Origin: Sminthopsis crassicaudata
Taxonomy: Eukaryota
Assembly: GCF_048593235.1 (NCBI RefSeq)
Contig: NC_133622.1
Location: 246,950,055-247,014,054 of the forward strand
Length of the DNA stretch: 64,000 nt
Reading direction: 5' to 3'
A program made the position numbers and the translations under genes. Shown here one piece after another: positions 11,079 to 44,690 of the stretch (within the stretch, counting starts at the first letter, position 1; every line of letters starts with the position of its first letter). Under the pieces are notes generated by a model. The model ran no database searches and was not told the origin of the DNA. It saw nothing but the letters and a program-made list of their open reading frames with translations.

Positions 11079-11174
11079 AACATTATTAGTGTACTCCTAA
11101 AAATTACTTTTTCATTAATTTGTATTTAATTACTTATGTTAATGTTGTATCTATTAAATATGGAGGGGAAGAGA

Positions 11175-25500: not shown

Positions 25501-28500
25501 GCGTCCACCTATGATAGATGCCACACCTTATAGCTCATTTGACCGAACTTCATCTGTGAAATCTCCACCTCCCTCAATGCCAGCTACACGAAGAACTACA
25601 CCAGAAATCCCAGAAAATTTTCCTCCATCCCATTTTGGTTCAGTGCGCCAATCTATAGTACCTGCCACACCTTTTGGCTCAGTTGATCGAACTGTGAAAT
25701 CTCCACCTCCCTCGGTCCCAGCTACACGAAGGACTACACCAGAACCCACAGAAAGTCTATCACCATCCCATTTTGGTTCAATGCGTCAATCTATGGTACC
25801 TGCCACACCTTTTGGCTCACTTGATCGAACTGTGAAATCTCCACCTCCCTCAGTCCTGGCTACACGAAGGACTACACCAGAACCCACAGAAAGTCTATTG
25901 CCATCCCATTATGGTTCAGTGCGTCAATCTATGATAGCTGCCATGCCTTTTGGTTCACTTGATGTGACTACATCTGTGAAATCTCCACCTTCCTCGATCC
26001 CAGGTACACGTAGGGCTACACCAGACATTCCAGAAAATCAAGCCATGGAAGATGCCGCATATGCAGACATTCTAGCTCTGACTAAATCTGTTCAATTTCC
26101 TTCTATCTCAGGCACGCCTATGCCAACAGAAGTCCCAGAAAATCAGCCTATGGAAGATACCATCCCTGCAAGCCTACTTGCGCTGACCAAGGGTATCCAG
26201 TTTCCTTCTATATCAAGCAGAGGTGCATCAGCCGAAATCCCAGAGAGTCTTCCACCATCCCATTATAGTTCAATGCGTCCACCTATGATAGATGCCACAC
26301 CTTATAGCTCATTTGACCGAACTTCATCTGTGAAATCTCCACCTCCCTCAGTCCCAGCTACACGAAGGGCTACACCAGAACCCACAGAAAGTCTATCGCC
26401 ATCCCATTATGGTTCAATGCGTCCACCTATGATAGATGCCACACCTTATAGCTCATTTGACCGAACTTCATCTGTGAAATCTCCACCTTCCTCAGTCCCG
26501 GCTACACGAAGGGCTACACCAGAACCCACAGAAAGTCTATCGCCATCCCATTATGGTTCAATGCGTCCACCTATGATAGATGCCACACCTTATAGCTCAT
26601 TTGACCGAACTTCATCTGTGAAATCTCCACTTTCCTCTGTCCCGGCTTCACGAAGAATCACACCAGAAGTCACAGAAAATTTTCCTCCATCCCATTTTGG
26701 TTCAGTGCGTCAATCTATGATAGCTGCCACACCTTATACCTCATTTGACCGAACTTCATCTGTGAAATCTCCACCTCCCTCACTCCCAGCTACACGAAGG
26801 ACTACACCAGAACCCACAGAAAGTCTATCACCATCCCATTATGGTTCAGTGCGTCAATCTATGATAGCTGCCACACCTTTTGGCTCACTTGACCTAACTA
26901 CATCTGTGAAATCTCCACCTTCCTCGGTCCCAGGTACACGTAGGGCTACACCAGACATTCCAGAAAATCAAGCCATGGAAGATGCTGCATATGCAGACCT
27001 TCTTGCACTGACTAAATCTGTTCAATTTCCTTCTATCTCCGGCATGGCTATGCCAACAGATATCCCAGAAAATCAGCTGATGGAAGACACCACAGGCATA
27101 CTTACCCTGAGCAAGGGTATACAATTTCCTTCTTTATCAAGCAGAGGTGCATCAGCCGAAATCCCAGAAAATCTTCCACCATCCAATTTCAGTTCAGTGC
27201 GTCAATCTATGGTAGATGCCACACCTTATGGCTTATTTAACCTGATTACATCTGTGAACCCTCCATCTCCCTCTGTCCCAGCTACACGAAGACCTACAGC
27301 AGCAGTCTCAGAAATTCCACCATCCCATTATGGTTCAGTGCGTCAAACTATGATAGATGCCACACCTTTTGGTCCAGTTGACCTATCTAGATCTGTGAAA
27401 TCTCCACTTTCCTCTGTCCCAGCTACCCGAAGGACTACACCAGAAGTTACAGAAAACCTACCATCCCATTTTAGTTCATTGCGTCAACCTATGGCAGATA
27501 CCACACATTTTGGTCCAGTTGACCTAATAATAGCAGTGCAATCTCCGTCTTCCTCTGTCCTACCTACACAAGGTATAGCAACTGAAGTCCCAGAAAATCA
27601 ATTCATGGAAGATACCATACTTTCAGGCCCCCATGCATTAACCAAATCTATTCAATTTCCTTTCATCTCAGGCCCAGCCACACCAATAGAAGTCTCAGAA
27701 AATCAATCCACTGAAGATGCCACAATTTCAGGCCCTCTTGTACGGTCCAAATCTGTGCAATTTCCTTCTATCTCAGGCACGGCTACACCTACAGAAGTCC
27801 CAGAAAATCTTCTATCCAATTTCAGTTCAATACCACAATCTATGGATGATACCACACCTTTTGACTTATTTAACGTGACTTCATCTGTGCAATCTCCACG
27901 TTCCTCTGCCCCAGTTCCACGAAGATCTACACCAACAGAATTCAGAGAAAATCGTCCTCTATCCAGTTTCGGTTTGTTGACTCATTCCACTGAAATTGCT
28001 CCACCTTTACGCTTTACCTTATCTATGCAATCTCTAATTTCCTCTGTCCCAACTACACCAAGGGTAATCACAGAAAACTCTCATCCATCCAATTTAAGTT
28101 CATTGACTCATTCCACTGAAATTGCTATACCTTTACACTTAATTGACCTGACCACACCTGTATTCATAGAAGCAGTACCTTTCACATCTACACAATCTCT
28201 ATTTACTTCTGCCCCAAGTGTTCCAAGAGAAATCTTGGAAGATCCTCATTTATCCATTTTAAACACATCATTTCAATCTACTGAAATTGCCACACCTTTT
28301 GGCTTACTTGACCTTGTCTCATTTTCACAATCTCCCCATTCTTCTGTCCTGACAACACTAACAGAGGTCTCAAAAAGTCCTCCTTTATCCAATTTAAGTC
28401 CATTGATTCAATCTACTGAAGGTACCATACATTCAAGCCCAAGTTTGCTGACCAAATCTGTGCAATTTCCTTCTCTCTCAGACACAGTTAACTCAACAGA

Positions 28501-31500
28501 AGTCCCAGGTAATCATCTTCCATCCAAATCCAATTCAATGACTCAATCTATGGAAGATGCCACATCTTTAGGCCCATTTTCACTGACCAAAGTTATACAG
28601 TTTCCTTCTATCTCAGGCTCAGTTACCTCAACAGAAGTCCCAGGAAATCCTCTTCCATCCAATTTCAGTTCAATGACTCAATCTATAGAAGACGCCACAC
28701 CTCCAAGCCCAAGTTTGCTGACCAAATTTGTGCAATTTCCTTCTATCTCAGGCCCGGCTACCTCAACAGACATCTCAGGAAACCCTCCTCCATCCAATTT
28801 CAATCCAATGACTCAATCTGTGGAAGATGCCCCACCTTCAGGTCCACGTTTGCTGACCAAATCTGTGCAATTTCCTTCTGTCTCAGGCTTGGCTGCCTCA
28901 ACAGAAGATTCAGGAAATCCTCCTCCATCCAATGTAAGTTTAATGACTCAATCTATGGAAGATGCCACACCTCCAAGCCCAAGTTTGCTGACCAAATCTG
29001 TGCAATTTCCTTCTATCTCAGGCCCGGCTATCTCAACAGAAGTCTCAGGAAATCCTCCTCCATCCAATTTAAGTTCAATGACTCAATATATGGAAGATGC
29101 CACACCTTCAAGCCCACATTTGCTGACCAAATCTGTGCAATTTCCTTCTATCTCAGGCCCAGCCATCTCAAGAGAAGTCTCAGGAAATCCTCTTCCATCC
29201 AATTTAAGTTCGATGATTAAATCCATGGAAGAAGAGAGACCTTCAGGCCTACTTGCCCTGAACGAATCTGTGCAACTTCCCTCTTTCTCAGGGCCAAGTA
29301 AATCAAATAAAATCATACAGATTCTCCCTTTCTCTTCCAAATCAAATTCACTCACAAACAAATCTGTGCATTTTCCCTCTTTTTCAGGTCCAAGTGCACC
29401 AATAGCTGAAGTTCCCTCTTTCTCTGCACTGAGCTCATCAAAGGAATCCACAAAACTTCTAATATCTGCAAGTAAATCTATACAATTCCATTCTTTCTCA
29501 GATTCTGTTCCAGCAAGTAAATTTATAAGTCCCTTTCCCCCTGACTCAAGTTCATCAAGGGAACCCATAGATGTTCCTTCTTTGGGATCTATTGCAATAA
29601 GCAAATCTTTGCAAGTATCTTTCTTGATTTCAAGTTTAGTCAAAGAATACACAGAGAGTCCATCTTTGCTAAGATTAAATTCAGGGTCAAAAATAAAAAA
29701 GGATCATCCTCCCTCTTTTCCAATTTTATCAAAAGAATCCATAGGAGCTCATTTTTCATATAACCTAATTTCAGAAAACAAAGGCATGCAGGTTCCTCGT
29801 GTTGAGATTTTTTTTTCAAATAAAGCTATCCAAATTCCCTCTATATGTGAAATACATTTAGTGAATGACTTTGCAGAAGTTCTGTGTGCATTCAGCTCAA
29901 GTCAATCAGGAAAATTTATACAATATCCCATTGCAGCTAGAATACTTTTAGAAAGCAAATCAGTGCAAGTTCCTTTTTCTGCTGCTATATTTTCTAAAAG
30001 TAAATCTATAAAATTTTCTTCTTCCTCTAGCGGAATTTCAATGACACAATCCACACAATGTCTTTCATTTTTTGACTCAACATCAAGTGAATGCATGGAA
30101 GTTCAATCTTTCTCAGTTCCACTTTCATCAAACAAATCCATACAAATTCTTTATTTCTCTGAGTCAAAATCATCAAAAGAAGACATACACTTTCTCTCAA
30201 CCTACCATACTACTGCTGTGAACAAACTGATGCAAGTATGTTTCTTTTCTGATATAGGTCCATCATCTCCACACAAAGCAGTTATAGCTTTGCCAGGTCC
30301 ACTTTTATCAAGAGAATCTAAGTTCCCCTTGGATTTTGTTGCTATTTTAAGCATAAAGCTTATTCGATTTCCTTCATTTTCTGATCAAAGTTCATCAGAC
30401 ACATATACACAGGAACTCCCATCTTTTCAAGTTGCAGTTTCATCACAAGAATATAGAAACGTTTGTACTTTCTCTGAAACTAATTCGCCAACAGAAGCTG
30501 CTACAGTTCCCTCTACTTATGGTGGCCTTATATTTGCCAAGTCTACACAAGTTTCTTTTATTTTTGTCTTAAGTTCATCAATAGTAATACCAGAAAAATT
30601 TATATCCTTCCCAGATCCACTTTTATCAAAGGAATCAATAGAACACAACTTCAATTTTATTATTAACTCACTTAGTAAACACACACATATTCCTGATATA
30701 TATTACCCAAGTTCATTAAATGTAAGCACAGAAGTTTCATCTTTCTTGCTTCCATTTTATCCAACAGAATCCAGGCAATTTTCTGATTCCTCTGACTCAA
30801 GCTGGCTGAGAAAAGTTAAAAAAATGTACTCTATCAATGGACCTATTTCAGTGAGAGAATGCACACAAATTTTTCACTCTTCTGATAAAAGTTTATCAAC
30901 AGAACCTTTACAATTACTGAGAGAAGATATAAATTTGCCTTCTAGTCATAGATCTATTTCAGTGAGACAATTCACACAAAGTTCTCATTCTTCTGATAAA
31001 TGTTTGCCAACAGAAAATTTACAGGTTCTTTCCATCGACTTTGATGTCAGAGTGAGCAACTTGACACAACTTTCTTCTCTGTTTGATGCAAATTCATCAA
31101 ATGAATGTATAAAAGAGGTTATATCTTTTCCAGTGCCACTTAAATTGAGAGAATCCAACCCAAATCTCTTGAACCTTGGTGTTAGTTCAGGCAGCAAGCT
31201 CAAACAAATTCCTTTTATCTTTGATCCAAGTTCATTACATAAGAACACATCTTTATCTTTCTTATTACCATTTTATCCAATAGAATCCAGGAAATTTTCT
31301 GATTTCTCTGTGATAAGTCTACTAAGAGAAAACATGCAAATTCCTTCTATCCTTGGAGCTATTTCAGTGAACAAATGCACAGTATTTTCTCACTCTTTTG
31401 ATAAATGTTTGCCAACAGAAACTTTACAAGTTCCCTCTACCCTCCTTGTTATCACAGTGAGCAAATCAATACTACAATCCTCCTTATCTGGAACAAGTTC

Positions 31501-32581
31501 ATCAACTGTATATCTAGAAAAAGTTGTTTGTTTGGCATGTTCTCTTTCACCAAGAGAATCCTTCCAAAATCCCTCAAATCTCGATGTGACTTCAGTCAGC
31601 AAGCTCACGAAATTTCCTCCTTTCTCTCACCCAAGTTCAATGAATGCCAAAACAGAAATTACATTTTTCTTGCTTCCATTTTGTCCAAAAGAATCCAAGC
31701 ACTTTTCTGATTTCTCTGACACAATGCTACCAAGACAAAAAGTACAAATTCCCTCTATACTTGGATCTCTTTCAATGAGTAAATGCACACAATTTTCTCA
31801 TACCTCTGATAAAAGCTTACCAACAGGAACTTTACAACTTTCCTCTACCCACCTTGCTGTCACAGTGAACAAATTAATGCAACATACTTTATTCTTTGAT
31901 GAAAGTTCATTAGCTGTAAGCATAGAAGAAGTTATACCTTTCCCATCCTTTCCAAAATCAAAGGAATCAATACAACATCCCTCAAACTTTGTTGATATTT
32001 TAGTCAGTAAGTCTGTTCAATTTTCTTCTTCCTCTGTTCTAAGTTCATTGAATATAAACATAAAAGAAGTTTCATCTTTCTTGCTTCTACTTTGTCCAAA
32101 AGAATCCAGAAAGTGTTTTGATTTCTTAAATATGAGTTTCTCTAGAGAAAATAGGCAAATTCTATCTATTCTTGGACTTATAACAGTAAGCAAAGACACA
32201 CAATTTTCTCTCTACTGTGAGAAAACTTTACCAACAGAAACTTTAAAAGGTCCCTCTATCAATCCTGCTATCACAGAAAGCAAGCCAATACAACCTACCT
32301 ACTTCTCTGATATGTCTTTCCTGGATTCACTAAAATCAAAGGAATCTATCCAACATCTCTCAAAACTCAGTAGTATTTCAGTTAACAAGTCCACCCAAAT
32401 TTCTTTTTTCTTTGTCCCAAGTTCATTGAATGTAAACACAGAAGAAGTTCCATCCTTCTTGCTTCCATTTTGTCAAACAGAATCCAAGCACTTTTCTGAT
32501 TTCTCTGACACAAGTTTACCAAAAGACGACACACAGAGGCTTTCTATCCTTGCACCTATTTCAGTGAGCAAAACCACATAA
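22580..32581 (+). CDS. MS4A14: MS4A14-like giant exon 6: 3,333-aa Ser/Thr/Pro-rich repetitive C-terminal tail
   Basis: Acceptor gctttatag|AAT in phase 0; open for 10,002 nt. The opening ENQLQIQIE...SLIKGYTFFKLRALGSP matches the start of the human MS4A14 last exon as I recall it (NDQLQFVLQE...SVIFGGYAFFKLTLSRSP). Confidence 0.9.
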   Translation, partial: NVYFRSSEVKEPKQTENVENQLQIQIEKNPSDKNEEKKSVSLIKGYTFFKLRALGSPVTRPPPCTTTPPPPPPPPPPPPPPPPPSPKVPEEKLQKQRCPTPASPSESLQISYFSDPGSSSALTQGSSFLEPCSIDKSVQVSSYSDLSSGGELTEFPPSSSTSSVSESTKCLSTSSSDDANICPKQPSVSISVQFPSVSCTTSREFVGTKRSSIRFGTKSVQCPPISGTTSPTETENEDILTKCLQFPNVSYTISSTDALDTSDHFKLTKSVQFPSVSCTNTAIECIDASDSALTKSVQFPSLSCIATTTDDSAFLSRTKSVQCPSESGMLTAKDTKLTKAMQFPSNSCMVTTEDSTPSGLLVQSKSIQFPPFSSRTTSPDITDAAPSCQLVLSKSVQFPSTSGTIIPPESLPPSHFSSLRQTIDTTPFSTCDRSSTLKSPPLSLPATRRTTPEATESVPPSHFSSMRQSVLDTTPYGSLDLTTSVISPPPSGPATRRTTPEVPESLPPSHFSSMRQTMIDTTPYGSLDLTTSVKSPPPSEPATRRATPEITESIPPTHFGSVRQSMIAATPYTSFDRTSSVKSPPPSVPATRRTTPEPIESLPPSHFSSMRQSMVPATPFGSIDRTTSLKSPPLSVPATRRTTPEPTESLPPSHYGSVRQSMIAAMPFGSLDVTTSVKSPPSSVPGTRRATPEIPENQVMEDSSFPGLLALTKSIQFPSISGMAMLTEVPENQSLEDTTGLLELNKAIQFPSLSSRGTLSEAPESLPPSHFSSMRPPMIDVTPYGSLDLTLKSPLSSVPPTRRITPEESLPPSHFGSVRQSMVPATPFGSLDRTVKSPPPSVPSTRRATPEATDFGSVRQSMIAATPFGSLDLTTSVKSPPSSVPGTRRATPDIPENQAMEDAAYADILALTKSVQFPSISGMPTEGPENQPVEDTTPAGVLALTKGIQFPSISSRGASAEIPESLPPSHYSSMRPPMIDATPYSSFDRTSSVKSPPPSMPATRRTTPEIPENFPPSHFGSVRQSIVPATPFGSVDRTVKSPPPSVPATRRTTPEPTESLSPSHFGSMRQSMVPATPFGSLDRTVKSPPPSVLATRRTTPEPTESLLPSHYGSVRQSMIAAMPFGSLDVTTSVKSPPSSIPGTRRATPDIPENQAMEDAAYADILALTKSVQFPSISGTPMPTEVPENQPMEDTIPASLLALTKGIQFPSISSRGASAEIPESLPPSHYSSMRPPMIDATPYSSFDRTSSVKSPPPSVPATRRATPEPTESLSPSHYGSMRPPMIDATPYSSFDRTSSVKSPPSSVPATRRATPEPTESLSPSHYGSMRPPMIDATPYSSFDRTSSVKSPLSSVPASRRITPEVTENFPPSHFGSVRQSMIAATPYTSFDRTSSVKSPPPSLPATRRTTPEPTESLSPSHYGSVRQSMIAATPFGSLDLTTSVKSPPSSVPGTRRATPDIPENQAMEDAAYADLLALTKSVQFPSISGMAMPTDIPENQLMEDTTGILTLSKGIQFPSLSSRGASAEIPENLPPSNFSSVRQSMVDATPYGLFNLITSVNPPSPSVPATRRPTAAVSEIPPSHYGSVRQTMIDATPFGPVDLSRSVKSPLSSVPATRRTTPEVTENLPSHFSSLRQPMADTTHFGPVDLIIAVQSPSSSVLPTQGIATEVPENQFMEDTILSGPHALTKSIQFPFISGPATPIEVSENQSTEDATISGPLVRSKSVQFPSISGTATPTEVPENLLSNFSSIPQSMDDTTPFDLFNVTSSVQSPRSSAPVPRRSTPTEFRENRPLSSFGLLTHSTEIAPPLRFTLSMQSLISSVPTTPRVITENSHPSNLSSLTHSTEIAIPLHLIDLTTPVFIEAVPFTSTQSLFTSAPSVPREILEDPHLSILNTSFQSTEIATPFGLLDLVSFSQSPHSSVLTTLTEVSKSPPLSNLSPLIQSTEGTIHSSPSLLTKSVQFPSLSDTVNSTEVPGNHLPSKSNSMTQSMEDATSLGPFSLTKVIQFPSISGSVTSTEVPGNPLPSNFSSMTQSIEDATPPSPSLLTKFVQFPSISGPATSTDISGNPPPSNFNPMTQSVEDAPPSGPRLLTKSVQFPSVSGLAASTEDSGNPPPSNVSLMTQSMEDATPPSPSLLTKSVQFPSISGPAISTEVSGNPPPSNLSSMTQYMEDATPSSPHLLTKSVQFPSISGPAISREVSGNPLPSNLSSMIKSMEEERPSGLLALNESVQLPSFSGPSKSNKIIQILPFSSKSNSLTNKSVHFPSFSGPSAPIAEVPSFSALSSSKESTKLLISASKSIQFHSFSDSVPASKFISPFPPDSSSSREPIDVPSLGSIAISKSLQVSFLISSLVKEYTESPSLLRLNSGSKIKKDHPPSFPILSKESIGAHFSYNLISENKGMQVPRVEIFFSNKAIQIPSICEIHLVNDFAEVLCAFSSSQSGKFIQYPIAARILLESKSVQVPFSAAIFSKSKSIKFSSSSSGISMTQSTQCLSFFDSTSSECMEVQSFSVPLSSNKSIQILYFSESKSSKEDIHFLSTYHTTAVNKLMQVCFFSDIGPSSPHKAVIALPGPLLSRESKFPLDFVAILSIKLIRFPSFSDQSSSDTYTQELPSFQVAVSSQEYRNVCTFSETNSPTEAATVPSTYGGLIFAKSTQVSFIFVLSSSIVIPEKFISFPDPLLSKESIEHNFNFIINSLSKHTHIPDIYYPSSLNVSTEVSSFLLPFYPTESRQFSDSSDSSWLRKVKKMYSINGPISVRECTQIFHSSDKSLSTEPLQLLREDINLPSSHRSISVRQFTQSSHSSDKCLPTENLQVLSIDFDVRVSNLTQLSSLFDANSSNECIKEVISFPVPLKLRESNPNLLNLGVSSGSKLKQIPFIFDPSSLHKNTSLSFLLPFYPIESRKFSDFSVISLLRENMQIPSILGAISVNKCTVFSHSFDKCLPTETLQVPSTLLVITVSKSILQSSLSGTSSSTVYLEKVVCLACSLSPRESFQNPSNLDVTSVSKLTKFPPFSHPSSMNAKTEITFFLLPFCPKESKHFSDFSDTMLPRQKVQIPSILGSLSMSKCTQFSHTSDKSLPTGTLQLSSTHLAVTVNKLMQHTLFFDESSLAVSIEEVIPFPSFPKSKESIQHPSNFVDILVSKSVQFSSSSVLSSLNINIKEVSSFLLLLCPKESRKCFDFLNMSFSRENRQILSILGLITVSKDTQFSLYCEKTLPTETLKGPSINPAITESKPIQPTYFSDMSFLDSLKSKESIQHLSKLSSISVNKSTQISFFFVPSSLNVNTEEVPSFLLPFCQTESKHFSDFSDTSLPKDDTQRLSILAPISVSKTT
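22781..22831 (+). repeat. Polyproline tract (17 Pro)
   Basis: Seventeen consecutive CCT/CCC/CCA codons. Confidence 0.95.
23809..27900 (+). repeat. Coding tandem array: ~21 units of 144/138 nt (48/46 aa) interleaved with pairs of ~35-aa KSVQF modules
   Basis: Unit ESLPPSHF(S/G)S(M/V)RQSM(I/V)xATP(Y/F)GSxDxTxSVKSPPxSVPATRRxTPE; e.g. starts at 23946, 24090 and 24234 (144-nt period). Confidence 0.95.
28440..29290 (+). repeat. Coding tandem array of 135-nt (45-aa) units, 6-7 copies
   Basis: ctgaccaaa recurs at 28448, 28583, 28718, 28853, 28988 and 29123. Confidence 0.95.
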
Positions 32582-32611
32582 TTTACTCACTCATCTTGTT
32601 AAACTTTTTAA

Positions 32612-35600
32612 AAGTTTAACAACGGAAATTTTACAAGTTCTTTCCACCCACCTTGCTGTCACAAAGAGCACATCTACTTTGTTGACGTAAGTTCAGCAAC
32701 TATAAATACAGAAGAAGCTATGTCTTTCTCAGGCCAACATAAATCACAGAAATCTATCCAAGATCATGCAAGCCTTGGTATTCTTTCAGTGAATAAGTCC
32801 ACCCAAGTTTCTTCTTCCTCTGTCCCAAGTTCATTGAATGAGAGCACAAAAGAAATTTTAAATTTCTTATTTCCATTTTGTCCAACAGAATCCAGGCAAT
32901 TTTCTGATAGCTCTGATACTTGCCTACCAAAAGATGACTCACAAAAACCTCCTAACTTTGGAACTCTTTCAGTGAGCAGCTGCACACAACTTTCTCACTC
33001 CTCTCACAAAAGTTTAACCACAGAAAGTTTACCAGTTTCCTCTGCTGATCTTGCTGTCATACAGAGCAAATGGACACAAACTACTTCCTCATTGGACAAA
33101 AGTCCATCAGGAGTAGACATAAAAGAAAGGATACCTTTCTCAGGTTCATTAAAATCAAGAGAATCCATCCAACATCTCTCAAACCTTGGAGATGATGTAG
33201 TTAACAAGTCCACCCAAGTTTCTTCTTCCTCTTTTCTAAGTTCAGTAAATGTGAACAGAAAAGAAGCTCCATCTGTCTTGCTTCCATTTCATCCAACAGA
33301 ATCCAAGGACCTGTCCAATTTTGACACAGATCTACCAAAAGAAGACACAGAAAGGCTTACTATCCCTGAACCTATTTCAGTGAGCAGCCAAATACAACTC
33401 TCTCAGTCCTCTCATAAGAGTTTAACAGAAATTTTAACAGTTCCCTCTACTGATATTGCTGTTAAAGAGAACAAATGGACACAAATTACTTCCTCATTAG
33501 ATGTAAGTCCATCAGGGGTAGGTATAAAAGAAGCTATGTCTATCTCAGGTTCGCTAAAATCAAAGGAATCCATCCAACATCTCTCAAACCTTAGTCTTGT
33601 TTTACCCAGCAAGTCCACCCAAGTTTCTTCTTCCTCTTTCGTAAGTTCAGTGAATGTGAACATAGAAGAAGCCCCAGAAAGGCTTACTATCCCTAAACCT
33701 AGTTCAGTGAGCAGCCAAATACAACTCTCTCAGTCCTCTCAGAAGAGTTTAACAGAAATTTTACCAGTTCCCTCTATCCATCTTGCTCTCACAGAGAACA
33801 AATGGACACAAATTACTTCCTCATTAGATGTAAGTCCATCAGGGGTAGGTATAAAAGAAACTATGTCTGTCTCAGGTTCACTAAAATCAAAGGAATCCAT
33901 CCAACATCTCTCAAACCTTAGTCTTGTTTTACCCAGCAAGTCCACCCAAGTTTCTTCTTCCTCTTTCGTAAGTTCAGTGAATGTGAACACAGAAGCAGCC
34001 CCAGAAAGGCTTACTATCCCTAAACCTATTTCAGTGAGCAGCCAAATACAACTCTCTCAGTCCTCTCACAAGAGTTTAACAGAGATTTTACCAGTCCCCT
34101 CTATCCATCTTGCTGTCAAAGAGAGCAAATGGACACAAATTACTTCCTCATTAGATGTAAGTCCATCAGGGGTAGGTATAAAAGAAACTATGTCTGTCTC
34201 AGGTTCACTAAAATCAAAGGAATCCATCCAACATCTCTCAAACCTTAGTCTTGTTTTACCCAGCAAGTCCACCCAAGTTTCTTCTTCCTCTTTCGTAAGT
34301 TCAGTGAATGTGAACACAGAAGAAGCCCAAGAAAGGCTTACTATCCCTGAACCTAGTTCAGTGAGCAGCCAAATACAACTCTCTCAGTCCTCCCATAAGA
34401 GTTTAACAGAAATTTTACCAGTTCCCTCTATCCATCTTGCTCTCACAGAGAACAAATGGACACAAACTACTTCCTTATTGGATGTAAGTCCATCAGGGGT
34501 ACATATAAAAGAAGCGCTGTCTGTCTCAGGTTCACTAAAATCTAAGGAATCCATCCAACATCTCTCAAACCTTAGTCTTGTTTTAGTCAGCAAGTCCACC
34601 CAAGTTTCTTCTTCCTCTTTCGTAAGTTCAGTGAATGTGAACACAGAAGACCAAGAAAGTCTTACTATCCCTGAACCTATTTCAGTAAGCAGCCAAATGC
34701 AACTTTCTCAGTCCCCTCATAAGAGTTTAACAGAAATTTTACCAGTTTCCTCTACTGATATTGCTGTGTCACAGAGCAAATGGACACAAACTACTTCCTT
34801 ATTAGATGTAAGTTCATCAGGGGTAGGCATAAAAGAAGCTACCTCTTTTACATCTGTTACGTCTGTCTCAGGTTCACTAAAATCAAAAGAATCCATCGAA
34901 CATCTCTCAAACCTTAGTCTTGTTTTAGTCAGCAAGTCCACCCAAGTTTCTTCTTCCTCTTTCGTAAGTTCAGTGAATGTGAGCACAGAAGAAGCCCAAG
35001 AAAGACTTACTATCTCTGAACCTATTTCAGTGAGCAGCCAAATACAACTTTCTCACTCCTCTCACAAGAGTTTAACAGAGATTTTACCAGTCAGAGAGAG
35101 CAAATGGACACAAACTACTTCCTTATTGGATGTAAGGCCATCAGAGGTAGGTATAAAAGAAGCTATGTCTGATTCAGTTTCACTAAAATCAAAGGAATCT
35201 ATCCAATCTCTCTCAAACCATAGTCTTGTTTTACTCAGCAAGTCCACCCAAGTTTCTTCTTCCTCTTTCGTAAGTTCAGTGAATGTGAACACAGAAGCAG
35301 CTCCATCTGTTTTGCTTCCATTTCATCCAAAAGAATCCAGGCAGCTGTCTGGCTTTGAAACAGGTCTACCAAAAGAAGAAATACAAAAGCCTACTATCCC
35401 TGAACCTATTTCAGTGAGTAGTCAAATACAACTTTCTCAGTCCTCTCATAAAAGTTTAACAGAAGAAATTTTACCAGTTCCCTCTACCCATCTTGCTATC
35501 ACAGAGAGGAAAATGACACAATCCACTTCCTCATTGGATATAAGTCCATCAGGGGTAGGCATAAAAGAAGCTCTATCTGTCTCAGGTTCACTAAAATCAA

Positions 35601-38600
35601 AGGAATCCATCCAACATCTCTCAAACCTTAGTCTTGTTTTACCCAGCAAGTCCACCCAAGTTTCTTCTTCATCTTTCCTGCGTTTCTTGAAAGTGAAAGA
35701 AGAAGCTCAATCTAGCTTGCTTCCATATTATCCAAGAGAATCCAGACAGCTATCTGACTTTGACAGAGGTCTACCAAAAGATGACAAAGAAAAGCCTACT
35801 ATCCCTGAACCTATTTCAGTAAGAAGTCAAAAACTTTCTCGGTCCTCTCCTAAAAGTTTAAAAGCAGAAACTGTACCAATTCCCTCTACCCATCTTGCTC
35901 TCATAGAAAGTAAATCAAAACAGTCTACTCCTTTATTTAATGCAAGTTCATCAGCTGTAGGCATAAAAGAAGTGATGTCTTTCCAGCTTTCACTAAAATC
36001 AAAGGAATCTATCCAAGATATCACAAACCTTGGTATTATTTCGATCAATAAGTCCACCCAAGTTTCTTCTTCCTCTGTCCCAAGTTCATTGAATGAGAAA
36101 ACGAAAGAAATTCTACATTTCTTGTTTCCATTTTGTCCAGTAGAATCGAGGCAATTTTCTGATATTTCTGACACTTGCCTACTAAAAGAAGAACGACAAA
36201 GGACTTCTCTCATACCTATTTCACTGAGCAAATGCACACAATTTTCTCATTCTTCTCATAAAAGTTTAACAGAAACTTTACCACTTCCCTCCACCTGTCT
36301 TGCTGTCACAGAGAGCAAATCGAAACAATCTAGTTCCTTAATTAAGTCAAGTTCATTAGTTGTAGGAATAGAAGAAGCTATGTCTTTCTCAGGGTCACTA
36401 AAATCAAAGGAATCCATCGAACATCTCTCAAACCTTAGTCTTGTTTTACTCAGCAAGTCCACCCAAGTTTCTTCTTCCTCTTTCCTAAGTTCAGTGAATG
36501 TGAAGGCAGAAGAAGCTCCATCAGTCTTGCTTTCATTTCATCCAAAAAAATCCAGGCAGCTGTCTGACTTTGACACAGGTTTACCAAAAGAAGAAACAGA
36601 AAAACCTATCATCCCTGAACCTATTTCAGTGAGCAGCCAAATAGAACTTTCCCACTCTTCTCATAAAAGTTTAACAGAAATTTTACCAGTCCCCTCTATC
36701 CATCTCCCTCTCACAGAGAGCAAATGGACACAAACTTCTTCCTTATTGGATATAAATCCATCAGGAGTAGGCATAAAAGAAGCTATATCTGTCTCAGGTT
36801 CATTAAAATCAAAGGAATCCATCCAATCTCTCTCAAACCTTAGTCTTGTTTTACTTAGCAAGTCCACCCAAGTTTCTTCTTCCTCTTTTGTAAGTTCAGT
36901 GAATGTGAACATAGAAGCCCCAGAAAGGCTTACTATCCCTGAACCTATTTCAGTGAGCAGCCAAATAGAATTTTCCCACTCCTCTCATAAAAGTTTAACA
37001 GAAATTTTACCCATTCCCTCTATCCATCTCGTTGTCACAGAGAACAAATGGACACAAACTTCTTCCTTATTGGATGTAAGGCCATCACGGATGGGTATAA
37101 AAGAAGCGATGTCTTTTACATCTGTTACGTCTGTCTCAGGTTCACTAAAATCAAAAGAATCCATCGAACATCTCTCAAACCTTAGTCTTGTTTTACTCAG
37201 CAAGTCCACCCAAGTTTCTTCTTCCTCTTTCGTAAGTTCAGTGAATGTGAACACAGAAGAAGCCCCATCTGTCTTGCTTCCACTTCATCCAAAAGAATCC
37301 AGGCAATTGTCTGATATTGACACAGGTCTATCAAAAGACGACACAGAAAAGCCTACTGTCCCTGAACCTATTTCAGTGAGCAGCCAAATACAACTCTCTC
37401 AGTCCTCTCATAAAAGTTTAACAGAGATTTTACCAGTTCCCTCTATCCATCTTGCTGTCAAGCCTACTATCTCTGAACCTATTTCAGTGAGCAGCCCAAT
37501 CCAACTATCTCAGTCCTCTCATAAAAGTTTAACGGAAGAAATTTTATCAGTTCCCTCTATCCATCTTGCTGTCAAGCCTACTATCTCTGAACCTATTTCA
37601 GTGAGCAGCCCAATCCAACTATCTCAGTCCTCTCATAAAAGTTTAACAGAAGAAATTTTACCAGTTGCCTCTATCCATCTTGCTGTCAAGCTTACTATCT
37701 CTGAACCTATTTCAGTGAGCAGCCCAATCCAACTAGCTCAGTCCTCTCATAAAAGTTTAACGGAAGAAATTTTACGAGTTCCCTCTATCCATCTTGCTGT
37801 CAAACCTACTATCTCTGAACCTATTTCAGTGAGCAGCCCAATCCAACTATCTCAGTCCTCTCATAAAAGTTTAACAGAAGAAATTTTACCAGTTCCCTCT
37901 ATCCATCTTGCTGTCAAAGAGAGCAAATGGACACAAACTACTTCCTTATTGGATGTAAGTCCATCAGGGCTAGGCACAAAAGAAGCTATATCTGTCTCAG
38001 GTTCATTAAAATCAAAGGAATCCATCCAACACATTTCAAATCTTAGTCTTGTTTTAATCAGCAAGTCCACCCAAGTTTCTTCTTCCTCTTTTGTAAGTTC
38101 AGTGAATGTGAACACAGAAGAAGCCCAAGAAAGGCTTACTATCCCTGAACCTAGTTCAGTGAGCAGCCAAATACAACTCTCTCAGTCCTCTCATAAAAGT
38201 TTAACAGAGATTTTACCAGTTCCCTCTATCCATCTTGCTGTCACACAGAGCAAATGGACACAAACTACTTCCTTATTGGATGTAAGTCCATCAGGGCTAG
38301 GCACAAAAGAAGCTATATCTGTCTCAGGTTCATTAAAATCAAAAGAATCCATCGAACATCTCTCAAACCTTAGTCTTGTTTTAGTCAGCAAGTCCACCCA
38401 AGTTTCTTCTTCCTCTTTCGTAAGTTCAGTGAATGTGAACATAGAAGAAGCCCCAGAAAGGCTTACTATCCCTGAACCTATTTCAGTGAGCAGCCAAATA
38501 CAACTCTCTCAGTCCTCTCATAAAAGTTTAACAGAGATTTTACCAGTTCCCTCTATCCATCTTGCTGTCACACAGAGCAAATGGACACAAACTACTTTCT

Positions 38601-39835
38601 TATTGGATGTAAATCCATCAGGGATAGGCATAAAAGATGTCTCAGGTTCACTAAAATCAAAGGAATCCATCCAATCTCTCTCAAACCTTAGTCTTGTTTT
38701 ACTCAGCAAGTCCACCCAAGTTTCTTCTTCCTCTTTTGTAAGTTCAGTGAATGTGAACATAGAAGAAGCACCAGAAAGGGGGTCTCATAAAAGTTTAACT
38801 GAAGAAATTTTACCAGTTCCCTCTATTCATCTTGTCACAGAGAGCAAATGGACACAAACTACTTCCTTATTGGATGTAAGTCCATCAGGGATACATATAA
38901 AAGAAGCTATATCTGTCTCAGGTTCACTAAAATCAAAAGAATCCATCGAACATCTCTCAAACCTTAGTCTTGTTTTACTCAGCAAGTCCACCCAAGTTTC
39001 TTCTTCCTCTTTCGTAAGTTCAGTGAATGTGAGCACAGAAGAACCTCTATCTGTTTTGCTTCCATTTCATCCAAAAGAATCCAGGCAGCTGTCTGATATT
39101 GACACAGGTCTACCAAAAGGAGACACAGAAGGGCTTACTATCCCTGAACCTATTTCAGTGAGCAGTCAAATACAACTTACTCATTCCTCTCATAAAAGTT
39201 TAACAGAAGAAATTTTACCAGTTCCCTCTACCCATCTTGCTGTCACAGAGAGTAAATCAAAACAATGTACTCCTTTATTTGATGCTAGCTCATCAGCTGT
39301 AGGGATAAAAGAAGTGATGTCTTTTCAACTTTCACTAAAATCAAAGGAATCTATCCAAGATATCTCAAACCTTGGTATTATTTCAATCAATAAATCCACC
39401 CAGGTTTCTTCTTCCTCTGTCCCAAGTTTATTGAATGAGAAAACGAAAGAAATTCTACATTTCTTGTTTCCATTTTGTCCAATAGAATCCAGGCAATTTT
39501 CTGATAGCTCTGACACTTGTCTACTAAAAGAAGAACGACAAAGGACTTCTCTTGTACCTATTTCACTGACTGAATGCACACAATTTTCTCACTCTGACAA
39601 AAATTCATCAATAGAAACTTTACCAGTTAGCTCCACCCACCTTGATATCACAGAGAGCAAATCAAAACAATCTACTACCTCACTTGAGGCAAGTTCTTTA
39701 GTTGTAGGAATAGAAGAAGTTAAGTCTTTTCCAGATCCACTGAAATCAAGAGAATCCACACAACTTCTCTCAAACCTTGGTATTATTTTAGTCAATAAGT
39801 CCACTCAAGTTTCTTTCTCTTCTGACTCAAATTAA
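32612..39835 (+). CDS. Second giant ORF (2,371 aa from ATG 32720), same frame and repeat family as the MS4A14 tail; probable continuation
   Basis: No stop for 7.2 kb. Same frame as 22580-32581, separated by TAA at 32579, 32600 and 32609. All unit-length differences are multiples of 3. Confidence 0.6.
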   Translation, partial: KFNNGNFTSSFHPPCCHKEHIYFVDVSSATINTEEAMSFSGQHKSQKSIQDHASLGILSVNKSTQVSSSSVPSSLNESTKEILNFLFPFCPTESRQFSDSSDTCLPKDDSQKPPNFGTLSVSSCTQLSHSSHKSLTTESLPVSSADLAVIQSKWTQTTSSLDKSPSGVDIKERIPFSGSLKSRESIQHLSNLGDDVVNKSTQVSSSSFLSSVNVNRKEAPSVLLPFHPTESKDLSNFDTDLPKEDTERLTIPEPISVSSQIQLSQSSHKSLTEILTVPSTDIAVKENKWTQITSSLDVSPSGVGIKEAMSISGSLKSKESIQHLSNLSLVLPSKSTQVSSSSFVSSVNVNIEEAPERLTIPKPSSVSSQIQLSQSSQKSLTEILPVPSIHLALTENKWTQITSSLDVSPSGVGIKETMSVSGSLKSKESIQHLSNLSLVLPSKSTQVSSSSFVSSVNVNTEAAPERLTIPKPISVSSQIQLSQSSHKSLTEILPVPSIHLAVKESKWTQITSSLDVSPSGVGIKETMSVSGSLKSKESIQHLSNLSLVLPSKSTQVSSSSFVSSVNVNTEEAQERLTIPEPSSVSSQIQLSQSSHKSLTEILPVPSIHLALTENKWTQTTSLLDVSPSGVHIKEALSVSGSLKSKESIQHLSNLSLVLVSKSTQVSSSSFVSSVNVNTEDQESLTIPEPISVSSQMQLSQSPHKSLTEILPVSSTDIAVSQSKWTQTTSLLDVSSSGVGIKEATSFTSVTSVSGSLKSKESIEHLSNLSLVLVSKSTQVSSSSFVSSVNVSTEEAQERLTISEPISVSSQIQLSHSSHKSLTEILPVRESKWTQTTSLLDVRPSEVGIKEAMSDSVSLKSKESIQSLSNHSLVLLSKSTQVSSSSFVSSVNVNTEAAPSVLLPFHPKESRQLSGFETGLPKEEIQKPTIPEPISVSSQIQLSQSSHKSLTEEILPVPSTHLAITERKMTQSTSSLDISPSGVGIKEALSVSGSLKSKESIQHLSNLSLVLPSKSTQVSSSSFLRFLKVKEEAQSSLLPYYPRESRQLSDFDRGLPKDDKEKPTIPEPISVRSQKLSRSSPKSLKAETVPIPSTHLALIESKSKQSTPLFNASSSAVGIKEVMSFQLSLKSKESIQDITNLGIISINKSTQVSSSSVPSSLNEKTKEILHFLFPFCPVESRQFSDISDTCLLKEERQRTSLIPISLSKCTQFSHSSHKSLTETLPLPSTCLAVTESKSKQSSSLIKSSSLVVGIEEAMSFSGSLKSKESIEHLSNLSLVLLSKSTQVSSSSFLSSVNVKAEEAPSVLLSFHPKKSRQLSDFDTGLPKEETEKPIIPEPISVSSQIELSHSSHKSLTEILPVPSIHLPLTESKWTQTSSLLDINPSGVGIKEAISVSGSLKSKESIQSLSNLSLVLLSKSTQVSSSSFVSSVNVNIEAPERLTIPEPISVSSQIEFSHSSHKSLTEILPIPSIHLVVTENKWTQTSSLLDVRPSRMGIKEAMSFTSVTSVSGSLKSKESIEHLSNLSLVLLSKSTQVSSSSFVSSVNVNTEEAPSVLLPLHPKESRQLSDIDTGLSKDDTEKPTVPEPISVSSQIQLSQSSHKSLTEILPVPSIHLAVKPTISEPISVSSPIQLSQSSHKSLTEEILSVPSIHLAVKPTISEPISVSSPIQLSQSSHKSLTEEILPVASIHLAVKLTISEPISVSSPIQLAQSSHKSLTEEILRVPSIHLAVKPTISEPISVSSPIQLSQSSHKSLTEEILPVPSIHLAVKESKWTQTTSLLDVSPSGLGTKEAISVSGSLKSKESIQHISNLSLVLISKSTQVSSSSFVSSVNVNTEEAQERLTIPEPSSVSSQIQLSQSSHKSLTEILPVPSIHLAVTQSKWTQTTSLLDVSPSGLGTKEAISVSGSLKSKESIEHLSNLSLVLVSKSTQVSSSSFVSSVNVNIEEAPERLTIPEPISVSSQIQLSQSSHKSLTEILPVPSIHLAVTQSKWTQTTFLLDVNPSGIGIKDVSGSLKSKESIQSLSNLSLVLLSKSTQVSSSSFVSSVNVNIEEAPERGSHKSLTEEILPVPSIHLVTESKWTQTTSLLDVSPSGIHIKEAISVSGSLKSKESIEHLSNLSLVLLSKSTQVSSSSFVSSVNVSTEEPLSVLLPFHPKESRQLSDIDTGLPKGDTEGLTIPEPISVSSQIQLTHSSHKSLTEEILPVPSTHLAVTESKSKQCTPLFDASSSAVGIKEVMSFQLSLKSKESIQDISNLGIISINKSTQVSSSSVPSLLNEKTKEILHFLFPFCPIESRQFSDSSDTCLLKEERQRTSLVPISLTECTQFSHSDKNSSIETLPVSSTHLDITESKSKQSTTSLEASSLVVGIEEVKSFPDPLKSRESTQLLSNLGIILVNKSTQVSFSSDSN
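33040..39420 (+). repeat. Coding tandem array of 327-nt (109-aa) and 405/408-nt (135/136-aa) units
   Basis: The aagtccacccaag anchor falls at 33206, 33611, 33938, 34265, 34592, 34934, 35240, 35648 ... 38063, 38390, 38708 and 38984. Confidence 0.95.
37460..37915 (+). repeat. Nested tandem of four 114-nt (38-aa) subunits
   Basis: KPTISEPISVSSPIQLSQSSHKSLTEEILxVPSIHLAV starts at 37460, 37574, 37688 and 37802. Confidence 0.95.
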
Positions 39836-39839
39836 TAAA
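39834..39839 (+). terminator. Candidate poly(A) signal overlapping the ORF2 stop
   Basis: AAT TAA TAA AG contains AATAAA, with ttgtttgt about 20 nt downstream. Confidence 0.35.
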
Positions 39840-42800
39840 GCCTTTGTGTACAAAGGCTTGTTTGTATACAGGAACTTGCATCTTTTAATGTTCTAATTTT
39901 ATCAAAAGAATCCTTATGTTTTCCTGTTTCTTCTGAAATATATTCAAGAGAAACAGGACATGTTCCGTTGTAAGTATTTTGCTACCTATAGTTACTCCAG
40001 TAACTACAGTTATCAAATCTATACAAGTTCTTTCCTTCCCTGACCTAAATTCATTAACCTTGAAGTTTTGTGTTTTTTTTTTCCAGTTCCACTTTCATCA
40101 AGGAAATCTATTCCAAATCTCTCAAACATTGATGTTCTTTCAGTCAGCAAGTCCACCCAGTTTTCTACTCTCCTCTGGGCAAAGTTCACCAGTCATATTC
40201 ACACAAGAAATTTCACCTTTCTGAGTTCCAGTGTCATTAAAAGAAACCACAGATATTGCTACTTTCTCTGAAACAAATTTAACAAGAGATGTTCCACAAA
40301 TTCTAACATGTTTTTACAATTACCAAGTCCACATAAGTTCCTTCTTTCTCTGACTCAAGATTATCAACTGTATGCAAAGAAGTCATGTCTTTCCCAGGTT
40401 CATTTTTATCAAGAGAATCTGTTCAACTTCCTTCATACTTTGTCACTATTTTAGTCAAGTCCACTCAATTCCTTTCCTTCTCTGACCTGAACTCAGGAAG
40501 CATAGACACAAGAAATTCCATCTTTCCAAGTCCCATGCTCCTGCTTTCTCTGAAACAAATTTATCCACTTTAAGTTTCCTCTCCTTACTGTGCTTTTGCA
40601 GTGACAATGTACATACAAGTTCTTTCTTTTTCTGACGCAAGATTATTAGTTGAATGCACAAAAGTTCTCTTTTTCCAGGTTCACTTTCATCAAGGGGATT
40701 CATAGAACATCCCTTTTCCTTATGTTATTTCAGTCAACAAGTCCACCCAATTTCCTACTTTCTCTGACTCAATTTTTTGAAGCACAACATATAAGAACTT
40801 ACATCTTTCCAAGTTACAGATTCTCCAAATGAATCTATGTTCCTGATTTCTCTGAAACAAATTCCTCAAGAATCACTCCCCAGATACCCCAGATATCTAT
40901 CATGCTACTAGATCGACACAAGTTTCTTCTCGTTCATCAGTAGCATGAGAAGAAGTTATGTCTTTTCCAAGACTACTTTGATCAAGGAAATCCATAAGCC
41001 ACCACAATTACCTTCTTTCTCTAATCCAAATTCATTGAATGTGAATAAGAAGAAATTACATATTTTTGCTTCCATTTTATTCAATAGAATCCAGGCAATT
41101 TTCTGATTTTCCTGGCAAAAGTTTACCAAGAGAAGACATGCAAATGCCTGAAATCCTTGGACCTATTTCAGTGAACAAATGCAGTTTCTTGATTTGACTG
41201 ATGGACATTTACCAAAAGAAACTGTACAAGCTGTATCTTCCATGCAAAATGACACAAGTTCTATCTTTCACTGATCCAAGTTTACTACCTGTATTCCTAG
41301 AAGTTGTTTTGTCTTTCTCAGGTTCATTTTTATCAAGAGAATCCATACAATATCCCTCAAACATTGATATTATTTCAGTTTCTAAGTCCACTGTTTCCTA
41401 CTTTTTCTGACCCAACTTTATCATGCATATGTATACAAAATGTTCTAACCTTCCACGTTTCAGATTTTTCAAAAGAATCCATGCATGTTTCTATTTTCTC
41501 CAAAATTCATCAGGAAAAGCTATAGAAGTTTCCTCTATCATCTCTTACAGTGACCAAATCCACACAAGTTCCTTTTTTCTCTCACACAAGTTCATCAACA
41601 GTATATGTAGAAGAAGTCATGTCTTTCCTAGATCTGCTTTCTTCAAGGGAATCCAAAAAACATCCTTCAACATCTCACATTCAAATTTTCTCTATCCTTG
41701 GACCTAAGCAAATGCACAGTTTTGTCACTATTCTGATAAAAGTTTACCAACAGAAACTTTATATATTCCTTCTACCTATCTTGCTGTTACAGTGAGCAAA
41801 TTTATACAGCCTACTTCTCTGATGCAAGTTCAAAATCTAGTTATAACTTCCAGGTCTATTTTTGTCAAATGAATCCATATGAAGTCTCTCAAACTTGGGT
41901 GGTATATCAGGAAGTTCACCCAATTTCCTCCTTTCTCTGACCCAATTTCATTGAGAGTGAATAAAGGACTTCTATGTTAGTTTCATCAAGAGGATCCGTA
42001 TAAGATTCTGTTACCTCTGATATTAATTCATCAAAAAATAAATGCAAATTTCTTCTACCAACAATAATATTATGGTGAACAAATCCTGCATAAAATTTTT
42101 CCATCACATTCATTGTAATATGCATAGAATTTCCAACTTCCCCTGGTCCTTTATCATCAAAAGAATATCTACTGGTTCCATCTGCTATGGACTCTGTTTC
42201 AATGAGTAAATATATTCTGTCTGGCCCAAATATACTAAATATATTTGCAAAAGACACTCTATCCTTTAGATCAACTTTATCAACAGAATACAAGTTACTG
42301 ATATCTGACATGTTCAAGTTATACAACTTCCTTCTACTTACCACACTATTTCTATAAGCAAATCCTATAAGTTCCTGCTTTCTCTGATCAAGGTTTATCA
42401 ACTATCTGCTCAGAAGTAATGTCTTTCCCAGATCCACTTTCATCAAAAGAATACATGCAAGGTCGTTATTTGTGCAATACAAGTTCACCAAGAGAAATTA
42501 CACAAGTTCCTTTTTCTTTGGAGATAATTTCAGTGAATAAGTGTACATGATGTTTTTTTCCTCCTCTGACCTAACACAATCAAGCATGTGCATAAAAGAA
42601 ATTCTACCTTTCCCATGTTCAGTTCCATGGAAAGATTCTATACAATCCTGTTTTCTCTGATGCCAGTTTACCCAATTTATCCAGGGGTGTTCTACTACAC
42701 ACTACTTACTCTCTGCTATTTCTGTGAACAAGTCAACATGAGAAGTTTGCTGTTTGCCTAAGAAGTTCAACTATATGCAAAAAAAAAAAAATGTTTTTCC

Positions 42801-44690
42801 TTTCTCAATTTCAAATTTATCAAGAGAATCTATACAAATTCCTGATGGCCTCTGTTACAAGTTTGCTAAGAAAACTGGTTTAAGGTCCCTCTACATCTAG
42901 CATTGTTCCAACAGGAAATTCTGTGCAAGTTACCACTTCTGCGGAACCATGTACAGTCAACAAATCTAACCAATTTTCTCCTTTCTCTGGCCTAAGTTCA
43001 GTGAGAAAATCAATGCAAGTTCCTTCTTTCTCTGACCCACATTCATCAAGCAAATGTACAGAAATTCTGCCTTTCTCAGGTCCAGTTTCATCAAAGAAAT
43101 TCAATTAACTTATTTCAGCGAAGGAAGATCACCAAAAAAAATTGAATCATACAAATTCTCTTTCTGATGAGCAGTTCCACCTCCTCGATTATATGCATCC
43201 AATGGATTTCAACAAATTTCATCTTTCTCTAGCCTTTCAGTGAGCAAATCTACAGCTGCCTTTTCCTCTGATCCAAGTTCTACAAGAAAATGCAAAAGAT
43301 GTCTATTTCATCCAATTTCATCAAAAGAAAACACAGATCAAAAGATTCCAGAATTCTGAGACAAATTTGCCAAGAGAATCTTTAAGATTTACCTTCCTGT
43401 ACTGACATTATTTTACAAGGTGGGGATCTTCAAGTTCTTCCTCCTTCTGTCTACATATGTTATATAAGCCTGCCCAATTTTAGTCTCCTCTTTCTCTAAT
43501 TTCAGCTGCCAAATTCATACAAGTTTCTTCTCTGCCTCAAGAGCATCAAGTGATCATATGTAATTTTCATCTTCCTTAGGCCAGGTTCAAGAGAATCCTT
43601 ACAAAATCCTTTTATCATAGCTCAAGTTGACCAAGATAAACCATACTAATTCTCTCTACTTTCAATCTCAATTTCAGAGAGCCAAAGTTTATCCAAATTA
43701 ACATCCAATTTTCATCTTATGGTCAGCATTAAGAAAACCCATAAAAATGATTTCTCTCTCCAACTCAAGTCTATCAAGAAAACCCTGGCCAGCTCTCTCT
43801 AACTATGGCACAATTTCATACAGCAAATCTACGAAAGTTTTTTTTTGTTGTTGTTCTCTATCCAAAGTCATTCAACATACAGAATTTCCATCTTCCTTAA
43901 TGTCAGTATCAAGAGAATCCATGCAAAGTTCTACCTGTATCTTAATTGCACAAAGAGAATCTATATCTCAAAATCTAAAACAATGAAGGGGGCAAATTTG
44001 TTCAAGTTCATCCTTCTGCTACTCCTAAGTTCAAGAAGCAAATACATCCATATTTCACCTTTTGATGGCTTAATTTTAGCAAAAATCCATATGCAAATTC
44101 CTTTGTTTGACCAAAGTCCACCTAGTTATTCCATAACAAGCAGCCATTCAGAAAGATTCCTTGTAAGTTCCTCTTCCTCAGAGTCAAGTTTACCAAGAAA
44201 ATCCATATAAAGTGTCTGCTTTCTCCAGATCAAGTTCAACAAAAGAATCCATGGAATTTATCTCTTTCTCCAGGCCATTTTTAGGAAGCACATTCCTGTC
44301 AATTCTGTCTGTCTTTAGCTCCAGTTTACCTTGTAGATGTAGAGAAGTTCTATTCTTCAAGCCTGTGTGAAGAGATTCCATGCAGGTTCTGATTTTCTCT
44401 AGATCAAGATCAATCAAAAAATTCCTTCAAGCCCTCACCTTCTCCTGCCCAAACTCAAAAAAAAATGCATTCAAGTTGTATTTTTTTCTAAAATCAGCTC
44501 AATGAAAAAAATCACTCCCCAAGAAAAGACTGCCCCACATTTCTTCCTCATGTAATCCTTTCTTCCAAGCCACCTCTCCAAGAAATCTATCCTGATCTCT
44601 CCAATTAGAAATGCTCCCTCCCTTCTCCTTAAATCTCTGATATTCTTTTGGGACATATATGAATTAGCCAAGGCCTCCTCAATATACAAT
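39836..44690 (+). pseudogene. Degenerate, stop- and frameshift-riddled remnants of the same repeat family
   Basis: Recurrent remnants such as caagtccaccc, tcaagagaatcc, gtctttccca and atttcagtgaaca. Short peptides like SFPGSFLSRESVQLPSYFVTILVKSTQF occur in shifting frames. Confidence 0.8.

Follow-up and report, generated by a model that had tools for sequence, protein, structure and literature searches.

The 64,000-nucleotide (nt) stretch of forward-strand DNA analysed here (NC_133622.1, positions 246,950,055 to 247,014,054; hereafter the window) carries a dasyurid marsupial gene whose predicted product is a four-helix membrane protein of MS4A/CD20-like type, the C-terminal tail being encoded by a giant exon, repetitive and serine-rich. 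A scan of the reading frames found one frame of this exon open twice, over 22580-32578 (9999 nt, open reading frame (ORF) 1) and again over 32612-39832 (7221 nt, ORF2), with in-frame TAA stops between the two at 32579-81, 32600-02 and 32609-11, as the preliminary description of this DNA had stated; these are the only two long open stretches in the window, all others being shorter than 900 nt. Comparison with the Tasmanian devil locus, taken from the independent assembly GCA_902635505.1 (LR735559.1:245599304-245622783, locus L001), indicates that selection has kept ORF2 open in both lineages since the lesion between the two ORFs arose, and in practice, therefore, ORF2 is almost certainly still translated. 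The likeliest route to it would be splicing inside the exon, a reading to which we give about an even chance of being correct.

ORF1 (22580-32581, 3333 codons plus TAA, on the + strand, as are all features below unless stated otherwise) forms the first part of the giant tail exon, whose acceptor, ttatag/AAT at 22579/22580 (the slash in a motif marks the splice junction), is in phase 0. ORF2 (32612-39835) comprises 7221 nt plus TAA, has its first ATG at 32720 and contains 19 units of 276-411 nt as well as one of 861 nt. Measured anchor-to-anchor on the KSTQVSSS codons, the first ten repeat units of ORF2 are 411, 405, 327, 327, 327, 342, 306, 408, 402 and 405 nt long and the last eight are 405, 342, 861 (405 + 4 x 114), 327, 318, 276, 408 and 405 nt. 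Every one of these lengths is a multiple of 3 (276-411 nt, plus the one unit of 861 nt); past the ORF2 stop, the spacing runs 352, 176, 414, 817 and 356 nt. Tandem Repeats Finder (TRF) returned periods of 327, 405 and 114 nt, the last of these as an in-frame sub-array of five copies of 38 codons each at 37349-37917 (94% matches). The junction of this sub-array occurs four times in the window and not at all in the devil locus, and the sub-array is thus specific to the window lineage. Among the 18 units, about 460 changes were counted by parsimony, evenly distributed over the codon positions (153, 138 and 169). Given that 4.2% of random single changes would produce a stop, about 19 stops were expected and none was seen, a deficit beyond chance. 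The preliminary description was therefore correct about the unit lengths, but the argument it drew from them for coding selection does not stand, since all of the lengths could be older than the lesion.

Alignment of the damaged unit with three paralogous units and with the devil sequence resolved the lesion into three events. The first is a CAA>TAA substitution relative to the paralogous units (32579-32581), which creates stop 1. The second is an insertion of ~10 nt at ~32599-32608, relative to the same units, whose bases reproduce, as an exact reverse complement, the 13 nt that follow. This gives a perfect palindrome at 32596-32622 (13+13 nt with a 1-nt loop, 100% complementary), the left arm of which is an inserted inverted copy of the adjoining AAAAGTTTAACAA (KSLT codons) and within which stops 2 (32600) and 3 (32609) both lie; the corresponding hairpin was predicted at -9.6 kcal/mol (z = -4.0). 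The third is a 13-nt deletion relative to the paralogous units at 32669-32680, near 32675, with a placement good to about 5 nt in either direction. Between insertion and deletion the KSLTTEILQVLSTHLAVTKS coding sequence is out of frame, and the reading register of ORF2 starts at the deletion site. The net change in length at the lesion is -3 in the window, and ORF1 and ORF2 therefore fall in one frame. In these respects the alignment bore out the earlier account of a CAA>TAA change, a small insertion and a repeat left out of frame as far as a deletion. An inverted copy of adjacent sequence is the signature of short-range template-switch mutation (PMC5453318), and the insertion, which copies the neighbouring 13 nt exactly in inverted form and produces a perfect hairpin, is of this kind. 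It is unlike such mutations in lying within a coding repeat, where it supplies two in-frame stops, and in having a substitution and a deletion as neighbours, which may or may not be part of the same event. A short motif, TATAAATA, is found at 32702-32709, 11 nt upstream of the ORF2 ATG, and reads TATAAATG in the devil; it is too close to that ATG for a TATA box serving it and probably represents just TINT codons.

The devil locus carries the same CAA>TAA substitution, the same palindrome but for one T (the loop T is absent, making the insertion 1 nt shorter), and the same deletion of 13 nt. Devil ORF1 spans 3464-13480, and its ORF2 is open over 6780 nt, from 13510, with a first ATG at 13618 and a stop at 20290-20292, in frame -1 relative to ORF1. 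Because ORF2 of the devil lies in a different frame from its ORF1, the apparent compensation in the window is not a selected feature and the frame shared by ORF1 and ORF2 is incidental, contrary to the suggestion that a compensating deletion had restored the frame. Divergence between the window and the devil is ~5-8%, with orthologous blocks 91-95% identical, and since all three events are found in both, the lesion is old, having arisen in the common ancestor of the two animals; the recent truncation that had been put forward as an alternative fails on the same evidence. From the first stop to the start of ORF2, the two sequences differ by 8.6% substitutions and a 1-nt indel, and this zone behaves as untranslated in both species.

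A homologous exon at a further locus, L002 (Sminthopsis crassicaudata CM109186.1, 3116-24771), is one uninterrupted ORF of more than 21.6 kb, at least 7218 codons, which runs off the fetched DNA; few single coding exons in mammals may be longer. Its annotation is limited to a fragment of 1551 aa, LOC141546259, and a CD20 gene model of 205 aa spans it. Alignment between the window and L002 extends over just the first 206 nt of the exon, the lesion is not alignable base by base, and the window sequence is far removed from that of the dunnart. As the L002 exon is uninterrupted, a single long ORF is likely to be the older state; the lineages found to carry the lesion are two, those of the window and the devil.

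Selection on ORF2 was assessed from the spectra of indels and stops between the window and the devil. Frame-breaking indels made up 12 of 13 in the upstream intron, the single indel of the lesion (1/1) and 20 of 25 in the tail beyond 39835, against 0 of 15 in ORF1 and 0 of 11 in ORF2, where one extra gap was a block-edge artefact. When the non-coding regions (upstream intron, lesion and tail) were pooled, 33 of 39 indels were frame-breaking, and the difference from ORF2 was significant (Fisher's exact p = 3.3e-7). The 360 substitutions in the aligned ORF2 blocks include no stop, against 12.9 expected from simulation with a neutral spectrum, and none of 2000 simulation runs was free of stops. 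Two blocks, 32720-33676 and 38783-39835, keep collinearity with unique flanks; taken alone, they have accumulated 145 substitutions and 3 indels with no disruption, where ~16 disruptions were expected (chance of none, P = 1.2e-7). The stop of ORF2 is at the orthologous position in the devil, and the first frame-breaking indel after it is at 39855, 20 nt beyond. Unit lengths in the devil are likewise all multiples of 3, and unit turnover after the species split stayed in frame. The proposal that ORF2 is under coding selection is thus upheld by these comparisons with the devil, although not by the reasoning with which it was originally made.

No comparable signal was found at the level of individual residues. 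By the Nei-Gojobori method, pN/pS between the window and the devil was 0.80 for ORF1 and 0.70 for ORF2, both inside the range of 0.54-0.88 obtained from pseudo-codons of the intron and tail, so that neither ORF has measurable constraint on residue identity. The comparison of dN/dS proposed in the preliminary description was consequently uninformative, and dN/dS, within the window as well as between species, was dropped as evidence because the intron and tail control gave the same values. Selection seems instead to act on the uninterrupted frame and, by inference, probably on the length and composition of ORF2 rather than on the identity of its residues, which would fit a disordered tail.

The sequence following ORF2 provides an internal control for an abandoned part of the exon. 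From 39836 to 43700 the same repeats continue in decayed form, with repeat homology in all three frames and many stops, and this region is former coding sequence that is now a non-coding tail. Stops in the ORF2 frame are common to the devil in 30 of 38 cases, and the tail had therefore decayed before the window and devil lineages split. The pattern expected of a dead 3′ part is thus found beyond 39835 and not in ORF2. The tail (39836-43017) is 95.3% identical to devil L001 20293-23480, higher than ORF1 (~94.2%), ORF2 (~92%) or the upstream intron (92.6%); possible explanations are constraint on a 3′ untranslated region (UTR) and faster-than-neutral evolution of the ORFs. The double stop TAATAA that ends ORF2 (39833-39839) overlaps an AATAAA poly(A) signal, which is AATCAA in the devil and so is not kept. 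Poly(A) signals were not depleted within the ORFs.

In the reading that we favour, a repeat unit of the common ancestor would have been damaged by the CAA>TAA change, by an inverted duplication of ~10 nt, of template-switch type, which added two further TAA stops, and by the 13-nt deletion. In-exon splicing, as in exitrons or intronization, would then remove the damaged zone of ~90-150 nt from some transcripts, using donor-like motifs (S/VSK; tca/GTGAGC or a/GTAAGT) and acceptor-like motifs (FSG, tctttctcag/G, or cacag/AG) that are present in every unit. An unspliced, short isoform would end at 32579 and a spliced, long isoform would continue to the stop at 39833, making 22580-39835 a giant last coding exon for a repetitive, serine-rich and presumably disordered cytoplasmic tail. 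Alternative splicing of this kind, with a short and a long isoform, would fit all the footprints. That a new intron is forming in a mammal, the stop cluster in a 17-kb exon being rescued by the repeats' own splice-like motifs, is offered more tentatively, at somewhat under an even chance; the same reserve applies to its corollary, that the arrangement of short and long tail isoforms persisted unchanged while two dasyurid lineages separated.

Two introns had been suggested earlier, 32007-32732 (intron A) and 32564-33064 (intron B). Intron A would use the candidate donor tca/GTAAGT (32007-32012, phase 1, rank 34 of 746 GT) and the candidate acceptor tgtctttctcag/G (32721-32732, phase 1, rank 124 of 1176 AG), both kept in the devil. 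Intron B would use the donor tca/GTGAGC (32564-32569, phase 0, 15 nt before stop 1, rank 104 of 746), which is GTGAGT in the devil, and the acceptor cttgctgtcatacag/AGC (33050-33064, phase 0, rank 181 of 1176), also kept. These ranks come from a simple weight matrix run over the whole exon. Since the 1-nt difference of the devil lies inside the lesion, an orthologous pair of sites that is valid in one species works in the other. The two proposed introns retain their GT..AG termini in the devil and keep the frame there, yet their sites are weak and unexceptional.

More specific, if weaker, support for splicing comes from these kept candidate sites together with NCBI gene models that place introns inside this exon in three marsupials (devil, opossum and koala). 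The devil protein model XP_031798835.1 (P0001) has a 90-nt in-frame intron within ORF1, caa/GTAAAT...ccctctttttcag/GT, at L001 10211-10300, corresponding to 29298-29387 in the window. The window ortholog of its acceptor (29388; FPSFSG codons) is the top-scoring acceptor in the whole exon, and the candidate acceptor tgtctttctcag is of the same motif type. Opossum isoforms X3-X5 leave the long isoform after residue 1220 and koala isoform X2 leaves the repeat after "GPVP"; both exits, as placed from protein models rather than DNA, fall at the unit position of the tca/GTGAGC donor (32564 in the window).

Several observations weigh against in-exon splicing as the route. GT..AG pairs that would remove the stops and keep the frame number 641, many of them kept in the devil, and such pairs exist by chance. 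None of the pairs spanning the lesion has strong sites or stands out from the background of the exon, the acceptor candidates ranking 124, 181 and 750 of 1176 and the donors 34 and 104 of 746. A minimal intron at 32564-32668 (105 nt) fits the damaged zone exactly and keeps the frame, with a poor acceptor, aaagag/C. If A or B were constitutive, 572 nt or ~400 nt, respectively, of frame-keeping sequence would be intronic (P ~0.01-0.04), and splicing would therefore have to be alternative, or proceed through an unrecognised site. Finally, no annotated protein corresponding to the ORF2 product was found by exact look-up or by a similarity search that was swamped by low-complexity words, and the NCBI annotation of the devil has no model over ORF2.

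The principal alternative, distinctly less probable than splicing though still to be taken seriously, is gene fission, in which the tail would have been split into two cistrons, with ORF2 on its own transcript starting in or near the lesion zone. The product, an equally doubtful proposition, would start at the ATG at 32720 and be a soluble protein of repeats, 2371 aa long and lacking a membrane domain. That ATG has a purine at -3 and is kept in the devil (13618), but a methionine is common at this position of the units, and little can therefore be read into its conservation. In koala, the model P0002 begins at the homologous methionine of a unit, MSFRSPLKS, although this may be merely the first ATG of a partial transcript. 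The frame offset of the devil would be harmless under fission, and the evidence for selection on the frame applies to it equally; against it, no promoter evidence and no annotated stand-alone ORF2 protein were found.

A more improbable route would join ORF2 directly to the upstream MS4A exons through a phase-0 acceptor within ORF2, skipping ORF1 and giving the protein two alternative tails. The acceptor of the giant exon is itself in phase 0, each unit offers one acceptor-like site in phase 0 (such as that at 33065), and the 205-aa Sminthopsis CD20 model leaves the giant exon unused, so that exon skipping is annotated there. On the other hand, the candidates in phase 0 close to the ORF2 start are weak (none scoring above 1.4), and the first ~400 nt of ORF2 also keep the frame.

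Very improbable, by comparison, is that ORF2 is a dead 3′ UTR left by truncation and open through recent re-amplification (concerted evolution) or by chance. Turnover of the arrays is indeed rapid, with many 327-nt units and the 114-nt sub-array in the window against mostly 405-408-nt units in the devil, and constraint on residues is undetectable. Yet the lesion predates the species split, the flank-anchored blocks are undisrupted (at the P value given above), the tail of the same repeat material did decay, and amplification without selection does not remove stops. Sequencing or assembly error in one continuous ORF, for which it can be said that long repeats are hard to assemble, has a negligible probability given that the devil assembly, from another species, has the same TAA, insertion and deletion. 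Decoding routes, namely A-to-I editing of the stops, readthrough and reinitiation, were rejected on the grounds that there are three stops, the first of them outside the 13-bp stem, and that the frame is offset in the devil.

Assignment of the gene to the MS4A/CD20 family was based on four upstream exons and on orthologous proteins. Searching with the opossum (Monodelphis) ortholog P0010 (5589 aa) by tblastn placed four predicted exons, one for the N-terminal cytoplasmic part at 3905-4048 (P0010 aa 2-49, 52% identity), one for transmembrane helices 1-2 at 11770-11949 (aa 46-105, 45%), one for the helix 3 region at 15438-15593 (aa 109-159, 40%) and one for the helix 4 region at 20811-20924 (aa 157-194, 47%). 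Aligned with P0010 aa 2-194, the four exons have no stops and contain hydrophobic stretches, as judged from the alignment. The exon at 11770-11949 matches the Pfam CD20 family PF04103 on its own (31.9 bits, cut-off 27.9), as does P0010 at aa 44-184 (46.7 bits). The giant exon comes directly after the helix 4 exon, and P0010 residues 196-249 match its first codons with 69% identity. No Pfam family scored above threshold in ORF1, in ORF2 or in the C-terminal parts of the orthologs. When the last 1199 residues of ORF1 were used in an exhaustive profile search, only marsupial proteins were returned, the best being the Tasmanian devil P0001 model (88% identity), followed by "uncharacterized" or "mucin-like" models of koala, wombat, sugar glider, dunnart and opossum. 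CCDC168, considered at first, was dropped once the orthologs showed the CD20 domain. A run of 173 N at 6479-6651 interrupts the intron that separates the first and second MS4A exons.

Some further features of ORF1 were recorded. Near its start, at 22800-22870, there are ~19 consecutive proline codons, and an antisense 310-aa "ORF" at 22858-23790 looks like a by-product of repeat composition. Arrays at 23802-27597 and 28360-29296 consist of 144-nt units (48-aa, proline-rich, PPSHF...TRRTTPE) and 135-nt units. They were not evident on reading the opossum or dunnart proteins, which suggests a lineage-specific invention of new tail repeats.

The case shows that frame selection can persist for millions of years on a downstream ORF lying past three stops, and that annotation pipelines miss ~2,400 genuine coding codons in no fewer than two marsupial genomes, where the gene is split into "uncharacterized LOC" fragments. 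Were splicing the route, this would be a rare and datable mammalian case in which an exon, once hit by a nonsense mutation, gave rise to an intron; were ORF2 initiated separately, it would be a case of fission of one exon into two genes. The case is also a clean illustration of selection on nothing but the openness of a protein region, and presumably on its length and composition, a form of selection to which ordinary dN/dS is blind and which indel and stop spectra detect.

Among known systems, the gene is closest in architecture to MS4A14, a long-tailed member of the MS4A/CD20 family (PMC2826416), likewise built of a CD20-like N-terminal domain with four helices and, after it, a C-terminal extension of exceptional length. 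The tail here differs in occupying ~5,750 codons in one exon, roughly ten times longer (relatives have >7,200 codons in Sminthopsis L002 and 5,589 aa in the opossum model), and in consisting of fast-evolving units of 48-135 aa that are interrupted by stops in the devil-like lineage. Very large, single, Ser/Thr/Pro-rich exons with rapid turnover of multiple-of-3 units are also found in mucins, and orthologs of this gene have been automatically named "mucin-2-like" and "mucin-5AC-like". Unlike mucins, this tail follows an MS4A membrane domain, and no mucin domains (such as VWD, CysD or SEA) were found by Pfam. The C-terminus of MS4A proteins is cytoplasmic by family topology, and the product would therefore not be a secreted glycoprotein.

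With regard to the interruption itself, the phenomenon would resemble exitrons and intronization or gene fission. In the intronization model a premature stop lies within the exonic segment that is removed (PMC2586383, PMC9612004), and exitrons are comparable segments (PMC4484396). As in those cases, the candidate segments here are GT..AG stretches of multiple-of-3 length within a coding exon, with a premature stop inside, and the lesion zone aligns with paralogous coding units, that is, it is derived from exon. The case differs in that its candidate motifs are weak and repeated in every unit, and in being known from evolutionary footprints alone. Gene fission, for its part, is matched by two long head-to-tail ORFs derived from one ancestral ORF, both maintained and the second with a conserved ATG, whereas for one mammalian exon to undergo fission, a new promoter or internal initiation would be required.

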